Source: Amoeboradix gromovi X-113 | Lineage: Eukaryota; Fungi; Sanchytriomycota | Length of the DNA stretch: 11,016 bases | Reading direction: 5' to 3' | Assembly (NCBI GenBank): GCA_018985225.1 | Contig: JADGIF010000320.1 | Coordinates: 1 to 11,016 of the forward strand | Shown: positions 335 to 11,016 of the stretch, one piece after another | Layout: every line of letters starts with the position of its first letter | Numbering within the stretch: position 1 is the first letter of the stretch | Translations under genes and position numbers: made by a program | The notes under the pieces: generated by a model | Seen by the model: only the letters and a program-made list of their open reading frames with translations | Told to the model about the DNA's origin: nothing | The model's database searches: none

Positions 335-448
335 AACATGTACGTTGCTCTTAATTTTATGAAATTTATTGCTGCTGATAGCTTTGTGAAGTTTTGAGAT
401 TTGATATCTCAGTTGTTATTAGACGTACGGAACGTATGATGGTTGTGC

Positions 449-473
449 CTGATTGGCTAGGTCTGATATAAAA
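449..473 (+). promoter_or_regulatory. Candidate core promoter of the CTL gene: inverted CCAAT box plus TATA box
   Basis: CTGATTGGCTAG (449-460; reverse CTAGCCAATCAG fits the NF-Y/CBC consensus) and TATAAAA (467-473), ending 33 nt before the ATG at 506. Confidence 0.45.
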
Positions 474-505
474 ACATTCCAAAATACTTTCACCAAGCCA
501 CGCAG

Positions 506-2484
506 ATGTCTGAAGAAAAGAAAGCTCCAAAGAGAGAATACTCTACGGAAGCAGGCCCAGTAAAACAAAGAAAAGTTAAAGATGTTCCATTCATCATTTT
601 GTTTGTCTTAATGTGGGTCGGCATGTTTATCATCTCAGGACTAGCTATAAGTAAGGGAAATATCAAAAGATTGAAATACGGTCGCGACTATCTAGGAAAT
701 TTGTGTGGGGACAAGAACTCGTTTGCCCTACCAGATGGTAACAAAGTCGATTTTGATTTTACTACGAAAAAGTACTTGTATTTTGTAGATGTAGGGTTCG
801 TTAAAAATCCAAACTCTATTTGTGTAGATGCATGTCCAAGTTATAGCAACACCACTACTGTTTTAATTAAGGACATAATCGATGCCCAGTACAAGAAGGT
901 TCCGGCTGAGTTTCAAGTGAATTCTACAATTCCTCAACCTTATTATGATGTAAGATCTACTGCATATAGATGTGTACCGAGCAGCTCCTTTAAATATAAT
1001 TTTAATGTTACACAATATGGTAAGCCATTATTTGGTGGGTCTGGAAGCGCGGACCAGAACGAAGCACAAGATGCTGTTATGGCGGATCAAGGCGAGAAAA
1101 ACGGGTTATCTGCAATTTGGGAAACTCTGGAAAACTCAGTAGGATATATTGCAATAGCTCTTTTGATTGGAACGCTTTTATCAATATTATGGCTCGTTGT
1201 GATTCAGATATTTGGTAAGTTCATGATCTGGTTTACCCTAGTTTTTACGAATTTTGCATTTTTTGGCTTGGGTGCATTCTTCTTAGCGAATTACTCCGCT
1301 GCCTCAAAGGGCAAAGCAGCATCATACAGCAGTAAAGCATTCAGTTCCGCGGCGCAGAATGAGAATGTGATGTTAGGATGCGGCATCACTTGTTTAAGTA
1401 TAGGTGTACTATTACTAGCAGTTACAATATTTATGGGACGACGAATTCATCTGGCTGTTGATTTAATGTCAGAAGCATCAATTGCTATGAGAGCCATGCC
1501 TTCATTGATGTTGATGCCTGTTATAAAGTATGTGCTACTATTGGGAGTATTCGCATGGTCTTTATTTATTATGAGCTTACTGGCATCATCTGGTGACATG
1601 ATTGCCGCTTCTGTTACCAATGGCTCTGAAAAAATTGCTTCAAAATATGAACCTGACCAGGTATTGAACTATTTACAGATTTATTACTTATTTGGAACTT
1701 TTTGGACATTTAACTTTATAGTTGCTGTCGCAGAAACTATCACGGCAGGTGCAGTGGCACAATGGTATTGGACTTTAGACAGAAAAAATCTTCCAAAGAA
1801 AATCGTGTGGGATTCTGTTGTTCGAACACTAAAATATCACTTGGGGTCAGTTGCAATTGGGTCCCTATTAATAGCAATTTTGCAAACTCTCAGAGCGATG
1901 TTGTCATATGCGCAAATGCATTCTAAAAAAGCAAAAAGTATTTGGGTAAAAAGAGCTTTGAGCTGCTTATCATGCTGCCTGTTTTGTTTCGAGAAGGCAT
2001 TGAAGTTTCTGAACACAAATGCATATATTGAGGTAATTTCAGATTTATTTAGATCGCAATATATGGTTTTGGCTTCTGTGAAGCAGCCAAAGAGGCATTT
2101 CACTTGTTATGGAGAAATGCTGCTCGTGCATTGGTGGTAAATGGTGTCGGCGATTTTATCATTTTCCTCGGAAAAGCTGCCGTTACTGCATCCACAGTGT
2201 TTATAACATTCTTCCTACTAAATCGCTCGGATGACGTTTCGCAGGACAATGAAGAGTCTAAGGGATTGTTCATGATGCCTTTGTTGTTTGTTGCATTAGG
2301 AACATACTTCATAGCGTCATTATTTACCTCTGTGTTTAAATTATCAGTCCAAACAATATTTTTGTCACTTTTGGAAGATGGTGAGCGTAATGATGGCTCT
2401 GCAGCGAAGCCGTTTTATGCTCCTCAAGACTTGGTCGAATTTTTAAATCATAAACCTGCTGGTGGAATGACAGAAAAGAAATAA
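506..2484 (+). CDS. CTL1: Choline transporter-like protein (CTL/SLC44/Pns1 family), join(506..2032,2053..2484), 652 aa
   Basis: Family motifs GPVKQRxxxD, GRDYLGNLCG, ICVDACP, RCVP, AGAVAQWYW, YHLGSVAIGSLLIA and CCLFCFEKALKFLN, plus multiple TM helices. Removing 2033-2052 restores the conserved NAYIE|IAIYGFGFCEAAKEAFHLLWRN motif and fuses ORFs 506..2140 and 2104..2484. Confidence 0.93.
2033..2052 (+). other. 20-nt spliceosomal GT-AG intron (phase 0) in the CTL gene
   Basis: GAG|GTAATTTCAGATTTATTTAG|ATC. Excision restores both the frame and the family motif with no extra or missing residues. Confidence 0.9.
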
Positions 2485-3263
2485 ATAATTACTAATTATT
2501 TCTATTGGCACAACACACCATTTAATTAATTGTAATTTGCTCTGCACTAGAGTACTTTTTGTGGATACTGAGTCCTCATTCTTGTACCTTGATACTAGTT
2601 TCAAATCAGAATGAGTATCTGTCTGATGCATGCCTACAAACGGTATGCTACTCGCTTTTCCTATTAAAGCAGAGGTTTTCAGCAATACCACAAAGTAAGA
2701 AGCAAATCTTTCCATTTGCCTTTCGGGGATCAATTGCTTTTCACGTCAAATAGAGGTAGTTGCGATCTTTGAAGACACTTGTTTCTGGTAAAGCTACGAC
2801 TTCCGAAATATAATAGAACCACATGTAAAGATGACTGCCTTAGAAGTCGAAACATTCCTACTTTGCGTGAATTAAGGATGGACGCACATTCTATTAAATG
2901 ATTATCGACAAGATAAGAACTTCATGGTCCCTGCTACTCCGCTGACGCTTTTAAGAGGCCCAATCGGGAAGCACTTGAATCATAAAAATCCGCTACAAAC
3001 GCCAAATATGTACCTATTTGTTGTAGTAAATTGCTACCTTAACCTTATTATTTTTATTAGTGTTTCATATTGATTCTACAAAAAAAGGATCCAATGATTT
3101 CCTTGCCAGTAAAATGGTCTTGAGGAGCTTAAACAATGTATTTTTGGACACCTTTATTGGACGTTTACTATTTAATTCCATCTCTTTTTGCCATCCCCTT
3201 TTGCTCCCCTCTAGTCCTGTCTCGATAGAGCATCTTCTCCTGTTTAAAGATATAATTTTATAA

Positions 3264-4151
3264 ATGAGCCCCAATAATAATCAATTGAGGTACTCCAGCA
3301 CTGAGAAAAAAGAATTACAGCTTATGCTTAGCAAAAGGGCCGGTCCAGAATTTATCAGCAAGAGGGCTGGACAGGGATCAACCAAGCATAACTATATTCA
3401 AGGCTGGCATTATTTCGAACTCCTTAACGGTGTTTTTGGCTTTAATGGATGGAGCTCAAGTATTCTGGACCATGGAATTGATGACATTGAAGTTATTGGA
3501 ACTGATGAGAATCCAAAGTACAACGTTGCTACTTTTGCGACGGTTAGGTTAACGTTAAAAGATGGTACATGTAGAGAGGACCTCGGTGTTGGGGAAGCCT
3601 CTAATGCAAAGTCTAAAGCTGCTGGGCTCAAACAAGCTAGAAAAGAAGCTGTTACCGACGCAATAAAGAGATGTTTCCGACAGTTTGGATCAATAGCCAA
3701 CTATTTGGGTGATGACAATTTCAACAAGATACTACAGCAAGCCAAAAACATACCCCAAAATAAGATTGACTCAAATGACTTTGTACATATGGCTGATTTA
3801 AGGCAATTTAGATCCAATGTTAATAATAAAATAGATGCCGAATTACAAGCTGATGAAAGTAAGGAACCGAAGCTGCCTACTCACGTAGAAGTAAATCTTT
3901 CTAATCTCAAGTTGCCTATGGTGCAGCAGGACAATCAAATTCCAAGATCAAATACAGCTGCGAATGACATGGGTTCTGAATGGTCCATAGATATGGATAA
4001 TATTGACCCTGCCGATTTAGATCGTGCAAGAAGGATATCGAGAAACGATCAAGAGAATGATTCATTTTCTAAGACTCCAAAAAAATCGAATTTCACCAAA
4101 AACGTACTTGAAGTAATTTCGCCAGAGAACTCAAGGCGCAAGAAGAAATAA
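3264..4151 (+). CDS. RAD52: DNA repair and recombination protein Rad52 (Rad52/Rad22 family), 295 aa, no intron detected
   Basis: N-terminal annealing domain motifs GPEFISKRAG, YIQGW, VFGFNGWSS, VRLTLKDGTCREDLGVG and ARKEAVTDAIKR..RQFG, followed by a short low-complexity C-terminus ending in the basic NLS-like RRKKK. Confidence 0.95.
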   Translation: MSPNNNQLRYSSTEKKELQLMLSKRAGPEFISKRAGQGSTKHNYIQGWHYFELLNGVFGFNGWSSSILDHGIDDIEVIGTDENPKYNVATFATVRLTLKDGTCREDLGVGEASNAKSKAAGLKQARKEAVTDAIKRCFRQFGSIANYLGDDNFNKILQQAKNIPQNKIDSNDFVHMADLRQFRSNVNNKIDAELQADESKEPKLPTHVEVNLSNLKLPMVQQDNQIPRSNTAANDMGSEWSIDMDNIDPADLDRARRISRNDQENDSFSKTPKKSNFTKNVLEVISPENSRRKKK

Positions 4152-4168
4152 GCATTTCAATAATCTTA

Positions 4169-4180
4169 AATAAATTTATT
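4169..4180. terminator. Putative bidirectional polyadenylation signal between convergent RAD52 and GATA genes
   Basis: Perfect palindrome AATAAATTTATT gives AATAAA on + (4169-4174) and AATAAA on - (4175-4180), the latter overlapping the GATA stop codon. The two stop codons are only 24 nt apart. Confidence 0.55.
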
Positions 4181-4935
4181 CATCTAATTTTGGAGTTAAT
4201 TGCTGCACAAGTACGGATGCTTCATTTTTAGGTAAATCAACAGATTCTAATTTTGACAATGCGTCAGACAAAAATGCTTGGAAACTACTCACGGAGTTAA
4301 GCATATCTCTTAAAGATGTGGGGCTTAGCACCTGAGAACTAATAACTAAGCTATTACCAAATGTAGCTATATGCTGTCCTACAACTCTAGAATCGAAGGT
4401 TTCTAGTTTAGGGGTTGTTATTTTCGGAAGGTCAGGTAGTGCAGGTAATCTTTTTCTTCTTTTTATAGTCGGGCTCTTCATGTTAGATGGCCGATGATTG
4501 CTGTGCAATTTGAAATACAACCCACAAGCATTACAAAGAGGTGATCCATCTAGATAAATTAAAAATACCTGGAGAGCGTCTCCATAATGGAGTCGAGGAT
4601 GTACCACAGTTGGAGCAATGAATTCCGTTTGAATGATAATTGCCTTGGTTCAAAGTTGGACATCCACGACAAGCTTCATTTCCACCAGTCCCATTGCACC
4701 GAGTAGGTCCACTGCATTTTGGTTTTGGAAGTCTCAAATCCTCTATCGATGGCAAAGTGAATTGCTGTATGTCAATACTTCTTTTGGGTAACGATTTCTC
4801 AGCTATGTAATATAACCCGCATGAGTTACACACTACTTCTCCATTTGGTATATTTCTCCACATTCGCGTAATTGTTGTCTTACAGTGATGGCATATCTTT
4901 GGAGAGCTCTGAATTAGATTTTCTATTTGATTCAT
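4176..4935 (-). CDS. sreA: Iron-responsive GATA transcriptional repressor of the SreA/Fep1/Urbs1/Sfu1 type, complement(join(4176..4549,4569..4935)), 246 aa
   Basis: ZF1 CHHC-x17-CNSC; iron-sensing Cys cluster C-x5-C-x8-C-x2-C (CSGPTRCNGTGGNEACRGCP, compare Fep1 CNGTGG); ZF2 [32 protein letters not shown] has exactly x17 only after splicing; basic tail IKRRKR; C-terminal amphipathic helix. Confidence 0.93.
4550..4568 (-). other. 19-nt spliceosomal GT-AG intron (phase 1) inside the second GATA finger
   Basis: Minus strand CCAG|GTATTTTTAATTTATCTAG|ATGGA. Excision joins ORFs 4531..4935 and 4176..4607 and yields the canonical C-x2-C-x17-C-x2-C finger. Confidence 0.92.
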
Positions 4936-5644
4936 GGTGTTTCAGGGCTTTCACCCGAATTTAATACAAACCAAGCGCTAAAGACGTCTGCTTTTCCAAG
5001 GATCGAAATTTGATTATTGGCGGCTCTTCTCGCTTTATTGCGATTTACTATTGATACGTGATAGCGGGCATCCACTTAACTAACAAATTTTTACAGATAC
5101 ATTCCACATTTTCATCATGTATAAACGAAGAGAAATAGTCTTACAATCACTTCTTCTTATCAGCTTGGTCTTTCATCGTTTATAAGCAAAGATTCTCTGA
5201 CTCTAAGATGTCGTTCTTGTCTTAATAGCCTTTTAGAGTTGGAGAGGCTCAGTGGCTGCCGAAATCGTAATTGAAGAAGTAAAATAAAATCCGTGTGCGC
5301 ATTCATGTTTTCTTTTTCTTCAAAGTTTCATCTCTGGTACAAGGCTGGTGGCCTCTTTCTTTCAATTAACGGTTGATTCAAGACAATCAGAATAATTATT
5401 GCAATCGTTATGCAGGTTTCCACAAATTTATTGCAACCATGAACGACAACTCTCTAGTTAGCAAACTTTGAGCGAATTACATAGTTCATTGGCATCTTGC
5501 TTTGTAGTGACACCACTAGCAAATTTTCAAGACCAACCTTTAAAGTGCTATCTTTAGATGTTATATTTGAGTCGTTTGGCTAACATTAATACAACAAGAT
5601 ATATTTATAGAAGCAATTAGTTAGGTTATAAGTGTGTTTATTGA

Positions 5645-7669
5645 TCAGGTGGAATCACCGCCAATCCTTTTTCTTAAGTTACTGCTTGTTATTTCTAGCA
5701 CATCGTCATCCGCAATTGACTTGGCTATCGATTGGATAACGGACTGCCCCGGCAATAAATCACTAGATGATGTCGCCTTATCAAAGTCCTTTTTATCTAC
5801 CAGTTCCCATGCATTCTCGCTTGGTGACAACTTTTTAATCAAGTTTTCACCACTTGGCCATCCACTCAAGAAATTCAAATGCAGTCCAAGTTGGCTTGCA
5901 GCTACTTCATCTTCAAGATGCTTGTCAGTAAGAAAGTATATTTTGAAGTCTGGGAATAAGCTTGGTCCCAGCTCATTTATAACATAATTGACCTGGTCGT
6001 ACAGGTCTTTACGCATCTCTCTAAGTTTCTTTGTGGGCTGGTAATAGAACACTTTTGGAAATATCACATACCACAACGGTTTCAATGATTTGTAGATGTC
6101 CAGTCCAGTCTCGCCTAATCTTAGGGCACAATATGTGCCAAATGGTAGAGCAACTGTGAAGTATATTGTATATTTAATAGATAGAAGTAAAGCTATGCCT
6201 TTCCTCAGCTGAAGTATGAAAAATGCTAATGAATAAATCGAATAAAAAATGGCTAGTAGAACCAAACCAAACAATATCTTCCAGGTGCTCTGTACATCTC
6301 TGCCCCATAGTTTAACAGTGCTGTTGTTTTTGGCTTCATCCGCCTTCCTTTGACTCAATATTGATGCTATAACGGCTATTGGAAGATTTAATAATATAAA
6401 TGGAACTGCAAATACTGTATAGGTAAGTAGCAAACATAATCTAAAGCTCATTAGGTAGATTGCTCGGTTTCTGCTGATGGCTGTCTTCTCTACTTGATGG
6501 TCTCTCAATCCATAATAAGATAATGATTCGTTGTATGAGAGAACCTTTGCAGTCAAAGTTTTAATGCGTTCATCATTCATATGCTGAATATATCCCTTCA
6601 TCAATCTTCTGGTCAGTTCCAGCTTCTGCACCATGGTCAGCTTTTGGTTTAACGGTGTGTACATTCTGCGGACCGCTTGTAGAACTTCAAGAGTTTGGTA
6701 GTCTGGTGCAGTTACTGTAACATTTCTAACACCTGTAACTATCATTTCCAGTAGCTTACCACATGCTTCTCTTTTCATGGATCCTCCGGTCTTATACATT
6801 TCAATAAGTTCCACCGGAACTTCAAAAGGAACCCCAAATTCAACAACTGCACGAGACCTGAACCTGTCTGCGTGAAAATAACTAAGACCGCAAGGGACAA
6901 TTTTTAAACCACAACTAGGATATTCGCTAAGAGTTGTTAATGCCATAATGGCTATACCTGCCTTCATTGGCAGCAGCTCGCTCTGGTCATGGGATCCGCC
7001 TTCAGGAAATATGCCCAAACAATTGCCACTTGCAAGGTGTTTAGAGACACTTGAATACATGTCATCATAGTCAGTAGGCTCTTGATATTTAAAAGACAAC
7101 GGTTTGTCGAAAATCGCCAGCCAATCTTTGACTTTGCAATCCACAAGTACAGTACCATCATCAATTATCTCTACGATAGTGAAAGAATTTTTGCCAATGA
7201 GAATTACACCCTTCAATTTATAATTGGTAAACTTAGTGTCATATCCAAAGAGCTTTATACGCAACTCAGTTTCTAATGATTCTAATACTTGAGGAAACTC
7301 AGAATCAGAATCCAGGATGTTGAATGATTTAGAACGAATCATGACTTGACCAGTACCAGGTTTGGTAATATCTTGAGGCCTTTCTACTCCAATGCTGTTC
7401 ATCCAGTTAGCGTACATTCCTACTAGTTTACGCCGTAATGATGCCTTGGCAATTAAGAAAGATACCGGACGAGTAGCAGTTTTAAGAACTACAAATGGGT
7501 CTACAAATTGGTTGTGGTGAGGCGCGATACTGAATATTACAGGACCCTTTGAAGGAATATAATGTGATCCACGAGATTTTACTTCTCTAAAAAATATGGA
7601 GACCACCATAATAAAGAACCTAGAGATAATTTGGTACATCATGCCGAAATTCTTGTTCGTAGTAGGCAT
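5645..7669 (-). CDS. SCT1: Glycerol-3-phosphate/dihydroxyacetone-phosphate O-acyltransferase, fungal Sct1/Gpt2 type, 674 aa
   Basis: Acyltransferase motif APHHNQFVDP (HxxxxD), SIGVERPQD, IFPEGGSHD, MKAGIAIMAL, IVPCGLSYFHADRFRSRAVVEFG, GRDVQSTWKIL, C-terminal TM helices and DIYKSLKPL. Confidence 0.95.
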   Translation of the reverse strand: MPTTNKNFGMMYQIISRFFIMVVSIFFREVKSRGSHYIPSKGPVIFSIAPHHNQFVDPFVVLKTATRPVSFLIAKASLRRKLVGMYANWMNSIGVERPQDITKPGTGQVMIRSKSFNILDSDSEFPQVLESLETELRIKLFGYDTKFTNYKLKGVILIGKNSFTIVEIIDDGTVLVDCKVKDWLAIFDKPLSFKYQEPTDYDDMYSSVSKHLASGNCLGIFPEGGSHDQSELLPMKAGIAIMALTTLSEYPSCGLKIVPCGLSYFHADRFRSRAVVEFGVPFEVPVELIEMYKTGGSMKREACGKLLEMIVTGVRNVTVTAPDYQTLEVLQAVRRMYTPLNQKLTMVQKLELTRRLMKGYIQHMNDERIKTLTAKVLSYNESLSYYGLRDHQVEKTAISRNRAIYLMSFRLCLLLTYTVFAVPFILLNLPIAVIASILSQRKADEAKNNSTVKLWGRDVQSTWKILFGLVLLAIFYSIYSLAFFILQLRKGIALLLSIKYTIYFTVALPFGTYCALRLGETGLDIYKSLKPLWYVIFPKVFYYQPTKKLREMRKDLYDQVNYVINELGPSLFPDFKIYFLTDKHLEDEVAASQLGLHLNFLSGWPSGENLIKKLSPSENAWELVDKKDFDKATSSSDLLPGQSVIQSIAKSIADDDVLEITSSNLRKRIGGDST

Positions 7670-7786: not shown

Positions 7787-8563
7787 TTATTCATCTTCGC
7801 TACTCGACAGTATTAGAGCTGGCTTGCTTGGTTTACTAGAGCTTTCAAGTTTGGTTTCCAATCCAGAAATCGAATTAAAGGTGATATTGGATGTAGCCAT
7901 TGTCTCCTCATATTTCTTCAGGTTTACTTCGTACTTTGCCATTTTCTTTTTAAGTTCTATAGCGTTCTCCTCGTCATATTTTTGCAATAAAGCTAAAGTT
8001 TTTTTTAATTCGAAAGCCGGGATGTCATCTCTTTTTACGTCTTCCATTAATCCCTTTGCCTTTTGAGATAGTATAGTCACCATATTAAAGGGTTCAGATT
8101 GATCCAAGGCCTCACCAATCAACTCGTCAGGCTTCACAGTCTTTCCTGCGATCAATCCGTTATCCTTAACATAAGCCCAAACTCTTTTCATTACGATAGA
8201 ATATGGTAGATATGCATACCCCGTAACCCTGCTCAATTTCGGGTCCAGCTTATTGATTTTACTTGAAGAAAATATTTTAATTGTAGGTTTCTTAGGCCTT
8301 TTCTTATCAGCAGGGCGTGCTTCTGCAGCTGACTTGCTGGTTTCGGAGATCTTTCGTTTCTCTGGAGTAAATTTGACTTTCTCATTTTGACAATCTTTTG
8401 CTCTTTGAAGTACAATTTTAATAAATTCCTTTTTATTAAAGTTTTTCCCCAGCGCGGATTCTACATGAATTCGGATATCTTTAGGAGATACCTGATACAG
8501 GTCCTTTCCTTTAACAAATGAGTCAATTATGTTTATTGCCCTGTCATCGAGTGCGTCGTGCAT
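7787..8563 (-). CDS. DEK-C plus SWIB/MDM2 domain protein (Uaf30/Tri1/Spp27-like), 258 aa
   Basis: First in-frame ATG is at 8563 (the ORF track starts at an upstream TTG). N-terminal IIDSFVKGKDLYQVSPKDIRIHVESALG resembles DEK-C, and LDPKLSRVTG..LPYSIVMKRVWAYVKDNGL...VKPDELIGEAL resembles SWIB. Lys-rich linker and acidic SSSEDE tail. Confidence 0.75.
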   Translation of the reverse strand: MHDALDDRAINIIDSFVKGKDLYQVSPKDIRIHVESALGKNFNKKEFIKIVLQRAKDCQNEKVKFTPEKRKISETSKSAAEARPADKKRPKKPTIKIFSSSKINKLDPKLSRVTGYAYLPYSIVMKRVWAYVKDNGLIAGKTVKPDELIGEALDQSEPFNMVTILSQKAKGLMEDVKRDDIPAFELKKTLALLQKYDEENAIELKKKMAKYEVNLKKYEETMATSNITFNSISGLETKLESSSKPSKPALILSSSEDE

Positions 8564-8697
8564 GTTTGAAATGGGACAGAGTTTACGAAAATGGCCCCAA
8601 GTATAAGTCGGGAATACTCCTTGCAAGATTTTCCAACAGTAGTAGCCTACTCAGCCTTATTTCTGTTAACCTGTTCTATAATAATTCGTCAAACAAG

Positions 8698-9005: not shown

Positions 9006-9555
9006 TTAATCCAGATTAATCTGACTAATAGGACATTTTGACTCAAGGAGGACATTTAACAGCTCGATTATTTTCTTGAATAAATCATTTATCGCGAATT
9101 TGTATGCATTTTTATATAACTTCATGACTTTCCCAGCTTTTTCCAATACTTTATTCACTCTATATTCTCCATTCTGACTAAAGGTAAATGTAATTAATGG
9201 ATGTAACCCTGAATATGTCAAATCTAAAGAAACAACAGGTACAGCATACATTCATCAACACTGAGGAACTGGTCCAAACGTGGAACAATTAGATGTCTTC
9301 CAATGCCTAAAATGAGATGAACAATAAATAAACTTGTAAACCATTTATTTAATAATCCTTGTGATTGGTCTTACCGAATATGCAACAGTAGAAACCATAT
9401 GGCAGCAAGGAATATATACACCAAGTATCTGCATCCTTATTCAATGCCACCTCAGTGTAGTGAAAGCATGAGCAATCACTGTAACGGAGCATCTAGCATT
9501 GCTAGTTTCTCTGGAAATTCTCGATTTTCTCGGAAATCAGGACTTTAACGAGGAG
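9006..9555 (-). mobile_element. Degraded SWIM-containing, probably MULE transposase, C-terminal relic
   Basis: Minus strand reads PDFRENREFPEKLAMLD / YSDCSCFHYTE (CSC at 9466-9474) / GVYIPCCHMVS (9396-9410) / SSHFRHWKTS, then two TGA codons in frame with ORF 9006..9251. Multiple frameshifts and stops. Confidence 0.45.
9396..9555. repeat. Dispersed direct repeat, copy B (partner at 26-187)
   Basis: About 90% identical to 26-187 by manual alignment. Confidence 0.95.
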
Positions 9556-9808
9556 ATGGGACATAAAAACTAGACTAACTTTCTGATACAGTTTGATTCA
9601 TTATTTCAAGTGTGTGTTAACTGATAGTAAATTAAATTAATCTGTCCAAGTAAATTATTTTAGTGTAAAAGCTTTTCATCTATCAAAATCTTCGAAACAA
9701 TGACTAATAAGAAGAGAAAACAAAAATTAAGTTATACGAAAGCTGGTAAGAAGAAAATGGAACAGATAAAGAGTATCGTCTAAGAGAATGCACCTTTTGC
9801 TTAGACAC

Positions 9809-10910
9809 TCAGAGACCTTGTATATTTGAAAGAGATAGCGGGCCATCTTGTCTTATTTTAAAGTGGGGAATGACATTAGCGAAAGAAAAGTGGTTTGAAA
9901 GAAAGACTTTTATTAATAATAGTATTTCCTCCTTGTGGAGCACCTCCTTTAAAAACGACGTTCTAGTTTTTATATTTGGTGTCCCAGATGAATTTATTTT
10001 ATACTCTACCAAACTTTCAAGCTTCTTTGTGCAATTCAATCTAATCTTCTGGCCCTGCCAACTTTGACTTTTTGGCTGAATCTAGGACAGTTTTGTTGAA
10101 TGTAATTATGCCCAGTCCAACTCTGTATAATTGTGGGATTATTTGAAGAAAATGCAAAAGTCTAATGTGTCTAGTTCCATCCTACAACGTTCAGGCTGCA
10201 TGAATTTTTTACTCTGGAGAAGGTTCGCTTGCAATTGAAAGAAGTGGGTCTGATAGTCATTAAAATCTGATGAATTCTTAACAGTTTGATTTCTTTACAT
10301 CTATTCTGGAAACAATCAATAGTCTCATTGGGCTATATAACTGATTCCCAATAACACCGTGCTCTGTAGCCAGTTCTTCCTTCAGAATACTTATGACACG
10401 TGTATATGATATGGTTGTACCAAAATGCCTACATGGTTTTATATACAGAGATACCATCGTATCAATACATGACTCGATTGAATATGGTTTAGTAGGAATC
10501 TCTGTTGCAAACGCAGCAGTTGTTTCTAAAAGAACTGAAATTTTAGTAAACTCGCCTTCTAATGCCTCATTGCATCTATCTTCAATAAACGCAACTGATT
10601 TTTGATTATGATGTGCTTGATTTCTTCTACAGGACAAGTCGCTTTGTTCATTATTTGAAAAACACCACTTGATGTACCCAAATCAATACTTTCCATTATT
10701 ACAGTCGTTTTGATTTTGAAAGGCGATAAACGCAATTAAACATTTATTTATTGATGGACTATTATATGCATCTTTTTTGAGTAAACTGTACATTGCCACA
10801 ATGTATTTGTACAATCTGCTACAACTAAAATTCTGAAAATATAGATTTTTGCCTTTGACTGACTTGAATACTACAAAAAGCAGCTTGAGATAAGCATTTC
10901 CCTCGGCCAA
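9809..10910 (-). pseudogene. Degraded minus-strand coding relic of uncertain identity, possibly a second SWIM/transposase-derived sequence
   Basis: ORFs 10683..10910 and 10278..10637 are one frame broken by a single TGA (10683-10685; KY*FGYIKW). It contains SC-x10-PCRH (PCRH at 10425-10436). A +1 frame continues ~49 codons to 10139, and ORF 9809..10039 follows. Confidence 0.35.
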
Positions 10911-11016
10911 ATTAATGCACCTGGATTAATATAATCCCGCTGACCTTAGACAGGGATAGTGATTAGGGACTAATCAAAACTAACATATGAGACATCAAAT
11001 ATAAAAACTGGACTAA

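Follow-up and report, generated by a model that had tools for sequence, protein, structure and literature searches.

Tiny spliceosomal introns as such are already known. Heterotrich ciliates carry introns of 15-16 nucleotides (nt) (Stentor coeruleus, PMC9505925), chlorarachniophyte nucleomorphs of 18-21 nt and Mikrocytos and other mikrocytids of 16-17 nt (PMC10245619), the introns of Encephalitozoon cuniculi span 22-76 nt (PMC3629993, PMC6349667), and those of myxobolid myxozoans and dicyemids have medians of 22-27 nt (PMC13644364). Here we analyse a stretch of 11,016 nt (the whole of which we call the window; positions 1 to 11,016 of contig JADGIF010000320.1) from the sanchytrid fungus Amoeboradix gromovi X-113, a parasite of algae, in which a choline-transporter-like (CTL) gene and the gene of an iron-responsive GATA factor are interrupted by 20 and 19 nt respectively. 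We hold it to be highly probable that both segments are U2-type spliceosomal introns and belong to a lineage-wide, length-locked class (19 nt more frequent than 20 nt, and 20 nt than 21 nt, with about 1,000 introns per genome) in sanchytrid fungi. What is new in this class is that it is fungal, numerous, 3'-biased, and found together with a retained U1 small nuclear ribonucleoprotein (snRNP).

Each of the described systems shares some features with the one presented here. The resemblance to Stentor comprises the GUA start, the AU-rich body, a branch A (predicted in sanchytrids) with a 5-nt 3' tail, the five small nuclear RNAs (snRNAs) and undetected Slu7 and Prp18, but the sanchytrid introns exceed those of Stentor by 4-5 nt, retain a T-N-A-Y branch consensus, are 3'-biased where the others are 5'-biased, and reside in a fungal host. 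Nucleomorphs and Mikrocytos likewise combine a narrow near-minimal size class with a reduced genome and hundreds of introns, whereas the sanchytrid case concerns the main nucleus of a fungus, which retains the U1 snRNP and a far larger set of spliceosomal parts; in Mikrocytos only U2, U4 and U6 and 17-19 proteins are seen. Encephalitozoon is also a holomycotan parasite with GT-AG introns and a short branch-to-AG region, but it has fewer than 40 introns, many of them 5'-biased in ribosomal protein genes, and a highly reduced spliceosome, while the sanchytrid introns are shorter, number about 1,000 and are 3'-biased. In the fungus Yarrowia lipolytica (ACTAAC-AC-AG, PMC2483917) the branch A at -6 is similarly fused to the acceptor and no polypyrimidine tract is present, although its introns are long, with a median near 200 nt, and carry strong consensus signals. 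Myxobolids and dicyemids, too, are parasite lineages with the 5' signal cut to GTA and with the U2 box and U2AF kept; unlike sanchytrids they are animals, have a broader length range and shift the branch A with intron length. No report of sanchytrid nuclear introns was found in the literature, subscription journals being mostly outside the coverage of the search, and the sanchytrid genome paper (PMC8371127) does not discuss them. Apparently the sanchytrid introns are the shortest in Fungi, those of Encephalitozoon beginning at 22 nt.

Two interrupted genes

Both segments, at 2033-2052 (+) and 4568-4550 (-), have GT and AG ends. If the 20 nt of the CTL gene are retained, the reading frame is shifted and meets a stop at 2140, which gives a 544-residue read-through product; retaining the 19 nt of the GATA gene leads to a frameshift and a stop at 4531. 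Spliced gene models were searched exon by exon, and the junction frames were scanned for stop codons by script. In the exon-wise Pfam search CTL exon 1 covers positions 1-218 of the PF04515 profile, and exon 2 covers 220-325. Exon 1 aligns with a chytrid CTL homologue through residue 500/501 and exon 2 from residue 502, and an uninterrupted CTL homologue, at whose residue 86 the exon 2 alignment begins, itself reads NAYIEIAIYG.

The GATA protein has two C-x2-C-x17-C-x2-C fingers around a four-cysteine segment, as members of the SreA/Fep1/Urbs1 group do, and the intron splits a G|AT (Asp) codon in the second finger. When the window exons are aligned to the uninterrupted Sanchytrium orthologue, exon 1 stops at residue 117 and exon 2 restarts at 119, and since the residue in between, 118, is D, as encoded by the split codon, the junction is exact to the residue. 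The C-x17-C spacing of finger 2 is found in 148 of 149 SreA-type homologues, and keeping the segment would add 6-7 residues to this fixed finger. The termini are thus GT-AG and the conserved frame is restored to the residue, as in U2-type introns. The preliminary description of this DNA, which had placed a 20-nt and a 19-nt GT...AG intron here and had each of them restore a conserved motif exactly (NAYIEIAIYG; C-x17-C), is borne out by these exon-wise alignments.

It might be argued that the true introns are longer, with distant splice sites, and that the 19-20 nt are a sub-segment of them, as further frame-restoring GT-AG pairs lie near both sites and 5 nt from the branch to the AG would be very little in most fungi. 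However, every such pair (up to 110 nt) costs 2-30 extra conserved codons, zinc ligands or IAIYG among them, and either is without the common 3' motif or has a weak donor. Longer candidates of the form GTA...YTRAY...YAG, with free branch distance, that join two open reading frames are not in excess either (9 against 11-12 for control trinucleotides, in a small sample of 146 kb). We consider longer introns extremely improbable at these two sites. A 10-nt reading that uses the internal CAG at 2040-2042 was also tried, and it does not restore the frame.

Sanchytrid relatives and the genome-wide length class

The window proteins have Sanchytrium tribonematis as their nearest named relative. Two uncultured relatives, represented by loci L002/L003 and L004 (L032 is of the L002 type), come from freshwater-type metagenome assemblies, and in both of them the gene order CTL, Rad52, GATA, acyltransferase, SWIB is kept. 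The CTL orthologues, 59-62% identical in protein, are broken at the codon of the window by 19 nt in L002 and by 20 nt in L004, and in S. tribonematis 20 nt stand at the equal site, as deduced from a read-through protein. The GATA gene is broken at the codon of the window by 19 nt in L002; in L004 the break is 21 nt long and contains an in-frame stop. The S. tribonematis orthologue is a plain open reading frame on the same contig as CTL, with finger 2 uninterrupted. As a reciprocal control, the glycerol-3-phosphate acyltransferase (GPAT) gene is intronless in the window and in L004, and the L002 orthologue has a 20-nt intron whose flanks match window residues 331|332 with no gap. The downstream exons of CTL and GATA are conserved at 61-74% identity.

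These comparisons bear directly on the suspicion that single-base assembly or amplification indels produced false frameshifts, the GT-AG segments being coincidental coding sequence. Such a suspicion is natural for an assembly from a low-input mixed sample, the sole run with this DNA being probably its source. However, a Logan contig that re-assembles run X1 (probably the source sample) independently has no indel across 400-5100, the equal codons are broken in independent metagenome contigs and GenBank contigs of other species, a retained segment would place surplus residues in the fixed finger, and lengths peak genome-wide. Several species differ in the length and sequence of the segment at one and the same codon, and together with the indel-free re-assembly this excludes assembly error; what probability we leave to it is negligible. 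Chance is excluded as well, because the introns of orthologues sit at the same codons but differ in sequence and length, and because of the same genome-wide peak.

This peak was obtained by searching the whole assembly (10,549,678 bases in 1,319 contigs) for the format shared by the introns: a GTA start, an AT-rich middle of 8-10 nt (13% GC) and a T-N-A-Y-N-T-A-G end. Exact counts of GTA...TNAYNTAG are 158, 180, 835, 463 and 241 at 17, 18, 19, 20 and 21 nt. At 24 nt there are 216, of which one repeat makes up about a fifth. As the baseline we took the neighbouring lengths (about 170-200); a reversed-pattern control was set aside, since it contains another word set and varies from 330 to 554. 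The excess over the baseline amounts roughly to 1,000 introns and begins abruptly at 19 nt. This floor is not a mere avoidance of in-frame lengths, because 17 nt is no multiple of three. In 104 kb of the fungus's own DNA, where lengths of 13-40 were allowed, two open frames are joined across the motif in 9 cases at 19 nt, in 6 at 20 nt and in single cases at 22 and at 34 nt, and at 19-21 nt there are 5+1 such cases in L002 and 1+2+1 in L004. In comparison with fixed-length systems the lengths spread over a peak of 19-21 nt, though the motif fixes the branch position and the sample is about 1% of the genome. The near-minimal introns that had been claimed amid fungal-type genes on the basis of two cases therefore form a genome-wide class in a sanchytrid fungus. 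Their position is also peculiar: the coding sequence upstream exceeds that downstream in 21 of 23 complete cases (a few of them mutually orthologous; the comparison was made after the bias had been noticed and with a 30-codon filter), and no candidate lies less than 30 codons from a start.

A different reading of the same segments would be that they are rarely spliced remnants that act as an expression throttle, or that translational recoding bypasses them. Short microsporidian introns are indeed spliced inefficiently, most of those of Encephalitozoon at less than 20% (PMC6349667, PMC3629993), and splicing in the present case is predicted from DNA sequence. On the other hand, about 1,000 genes would be hit; retention truncates the transporter and ruins the zinc finger, yet the downstream exons are conserved as stated above; and where one site varies between 19, 20 and 21 nt, three different recoding events would be required against one splicing rule. 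We find this very unlikely, with the distinction that low splicing efficiency fits our preferred explanation, while absence of splicing does not.

Several observations on the relatives and on recurring strings may be added. Public metagenome assemblies contain at least two undescribed sanchytrid-like species (L002, L004, L032), one of which also turns up as a contig inside GenBank GCA_043777775.1; two scans of JGI metagenome contigs yielded no additional sanchytrid loci. The reading frame of the S. tribonematis GATA protein (P0007) ends 16-19 codons past the intron site of the window, at ...LHGSIR, which suggests that another mini-intron may lie just downstream. In the GATA intron of L002 (12390-12372) the terminal TAG is followed by GAG; the first AG gives C-x18-C and the second (22 nt) gives C-x17-C, so it is possibly a tandem-acceptor case. 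Near-identical strings that fit the intron motif recur on many contigs, one of 24 nt (start GTACTCTAAAG) and one of 19 nt (start GTACTTCAAAA), and they may be introns of a multi-copy gene family or else belong to repeats. A recurring 30-nt GT...AG string was considered as a mobile intron and rejected, as it sits in a larger dispersed repeat and its flanks are shared.

Splicing machinery, mechanism and origin

U2 (102 bits), U6 (65), U5 (82.5) and U4 (53) snRNAs pass the Rfam cut-offs, and a U1 candidate of 37.8 bits, under its cut-off, has an intact ACUUACCU arm and an Sm site. U6 keeps the ACAGAGA box and the AGC triad, with a compensatory change in the internal stem-loop. U2 (L005 1501-1695; G000:C363:3739-3933) has an intact GUAGUA box and, relative to the Rfam consensus, one extra nucleotide, a U, between the helix-I arm and GUAGUA. 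Among the encoded proteins we found Prp8, U1-C, U1-70K, a U2AF65-like protein, Yju2 and Isy1; the U1 snRNP is thus represented by its snRNA, U1-C and U1-70K. Slu7, Prp18, the SF1-HH (helix-hairpin) domain and the DBR1 domain gave no match, but the essential N-terminal domain of SF3b1 was equally missed, so these blanks do not show absence; the sanchytrid assembly is about 92% complete (PMC8371127). Since five snRNAs (U1 under the cut-off), Prp8, U1-C, U1-70K and a U2AF65-like gene are found, a mostly standard U2-type spliceosome is likely. The preliminary description went further and held that introns of this size imply a modified spliceosome, which is not established: the core snRNAs and proteins are present, and the hints are confined to the extra U2 nucleotide and the four blanks.

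We propose that such a largely standard spliceosome would recognise the intron by position and by a fused branch/acceptor signal. U6 engages about +4 to +6 of an intron and U2 about -11 to -5. The branch consensus of the sanchytrid introns, A/T/C-T-N-A-Y at -9 to -5, can by its letters pair with the GUAGUA box of U2, which would cover about -11 to -5 and leave the A at -6 bulged; it is this usual T-N-A-Y context, pairing with U2, for which we read the A at -6 as the putative branch point. Branching at -6 would leave a lariat loop of 14-15 nt and a 5-nt tail, and the first AG would be joined without a polypyrimidine tract. The 19-nt floor might then represent a steric limit between the U6/5'-splice-site helix and the U2/branch helix, with about 2 free nucleotides in a 19-mer. 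Together with the Stentor-like 5-nt tail this hard floor suggests shared geometric limits.

In yeast the second step needs no Slu7, Prp18 or Prp22 when the branch-to-AG distance is less than 7 nt (PMC3392075, PMC10158995). Given this dispensability, and Stentor with neither Slu7 nor Prp18 detectable, a loss of the two factors in sanchytrids would be expected. One may speculate further that the fungal spliceosome was re-tuned to a 19-nt minimum, the extra U of U2 and a true loss of Slu7 and Prp18, perhaps also of SF1, fitting a 14-nt lariat, and that 3'-biased introns, about one per gene, are maintained or acquired owing to some function in 3'-end processing or mRNA surveillance. We regard this as a tentative idea and rather doubtful; if true, it would be the reverse of the 5' bias in other intron-poor genomes.

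As for the origin, on which our suggestion is weaker, most of these introns may be ancestral ones that shrank in the course of genome reduction, with turnover continuing, as is indicated by the variable presence among sanchytrids. L031 is a locus of an intron-rich eukaryote whose introns measure about 45-50 nt. At the CTL codon of the window it has a 5' splice site, which favours the shrinkage of an old CTL intron; the 3' end there is masked by adapter, the contig terminating at 1470-1521 in an Illumina adapter that mimics a 3' splice site. The mini-introns might instead be recent copies of an introner-like mobile element. Presence does vary among close relatives (the GATA intron is absent in Sanchytrium and the GPAT intron is found in L002 only), and the genome contains a few GT...AG strings, 19, 24 and 30 nt long, in identical copies. 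Yet the intron middles are mutually unrelated, the two window introns are unlike any recurring family, and the CTL intron is common to four species that are about 60% identical in protein, and we judge such a mobile origin to be unlikely. In a six-protein CTL tree the four sanchytrid-like species were not resolved, so that the GATA intron may have been either gained or lost among them.

Some points weigh against the interpretation of the segments as an old, genome-wide class of spliced introns. Since the candidates of a first pass supplied the 3' motif, its invariance is partly circular, although length was left free, and the DNA read directly makes up about 1% of the genome. A search for sequencing runs that hold this DNA returned a single DNA run and no RNA run, and we infer the splicing of both segments and the branch nucleotide. 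No intron stands at the CTL codon of the window in four chytrid CTL genes, and no finger-2 intron in two other fungal SreA genes, which leaves the ancestry of both introns weakly supported.

With these points taken into account, the sanchytrid class adds an independent origin of near-minimal introns, in a nucleus that still has the U1 snRNP and the majority of core factors. As these parts are fungal, they are testable in yeast, and the question of the minimal intron becomes more accessible than via ciliates or nucleomorphs.

Annotation and other features of the window

For the published sanchytrid proteins TransDecoder was applied straight to the genomic contigs (PMC8371127). As had been foreseen for gene finders with a higher minimum intron length, the calling of open reading frames splits these genes: in EukProt the CTL protein of the window is entered as the 544-residue read-through, and the Sanchytrium gene as two separate pieces. 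With such calling on genomic contigs about 1,000 genes would be split or truncated in the published proteomes, and re-annotation is needed before sanchytrid protein counts, 'lineage-specific' proteins and claims of gene loss are relied on. The features of the window are collected in Table 1.

Table 1. Genes, introns and predicted branch points in the window (position 1 is the first letter of the stretch)
Feature	Position	Strand	Basis
CTL/PNS1 (choline-transporter-like, PF04515) exon 1, 509 codons, end ...NAYIE	506..2032	+	Pfam profile 1-218, E 9e-56
CTL intron, 20 nt, GT-AG, phase 0	2033..2052	+	Orthologues interrupted at equal codon
Predicted branch-point A of CTL intron, position -6, inside T-N-A-Y	2047	+	A at -6 in 6/6 orthologous introns; function predicted
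CTL exon 2, 143 codons, start IAIYG	2053..2484	+	Pfam profile 220-325, E 2.4e-28
Rad52/Rad22 gene, intronless, single copy	3264..4151	+	Syntenic in relatives
GATA factor exon 2: finger 2 second half, basic region, tail	4176..4549	-	GATA profile 18-34
GATA intron, 19 nt, GT-AG, phase 1, within zinc finger 2	4550..4568	-	Orthologue comparison
Predicted branch-point A of GATA intron, position -6	4555	-	Predicted
SreA/Fep1/Urbs1-type iron-responsive GATA factor exon 1: finger 1, Cys-rich C-x5-C-x8-C-x2-C segment, finger 2 first half	4569..4935	-	Profile and homologue comparison
Glycerol-3-phosphate acyltransferase (GPAT) gene, intronless	5645..7669	-	Pfam match
DEK-C + SWIB/MDM2 domain protein, intronless	7787..8626	-	Syntenic in both relatives (L002, L004)

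The GC content of the window is about 37%, and the A. gromovi genome was published at 10.5 Mb and 36.27% GC (PMC8371127). Synteny with the relatives stops past the SWIB gene, and repeats lie beyond it. Positions 1-187, 9058-9557, 9768-9994 and 10981-11016 are pieces of dispersed repeat families found on many other contigs at 70-94% identity, and 19-187 and 9389-9555 are two copies of one repeat. These pieces are probably decayed transposons, and one of them contains the 30-nt GT...AG string that is frequent in the pattern counts.

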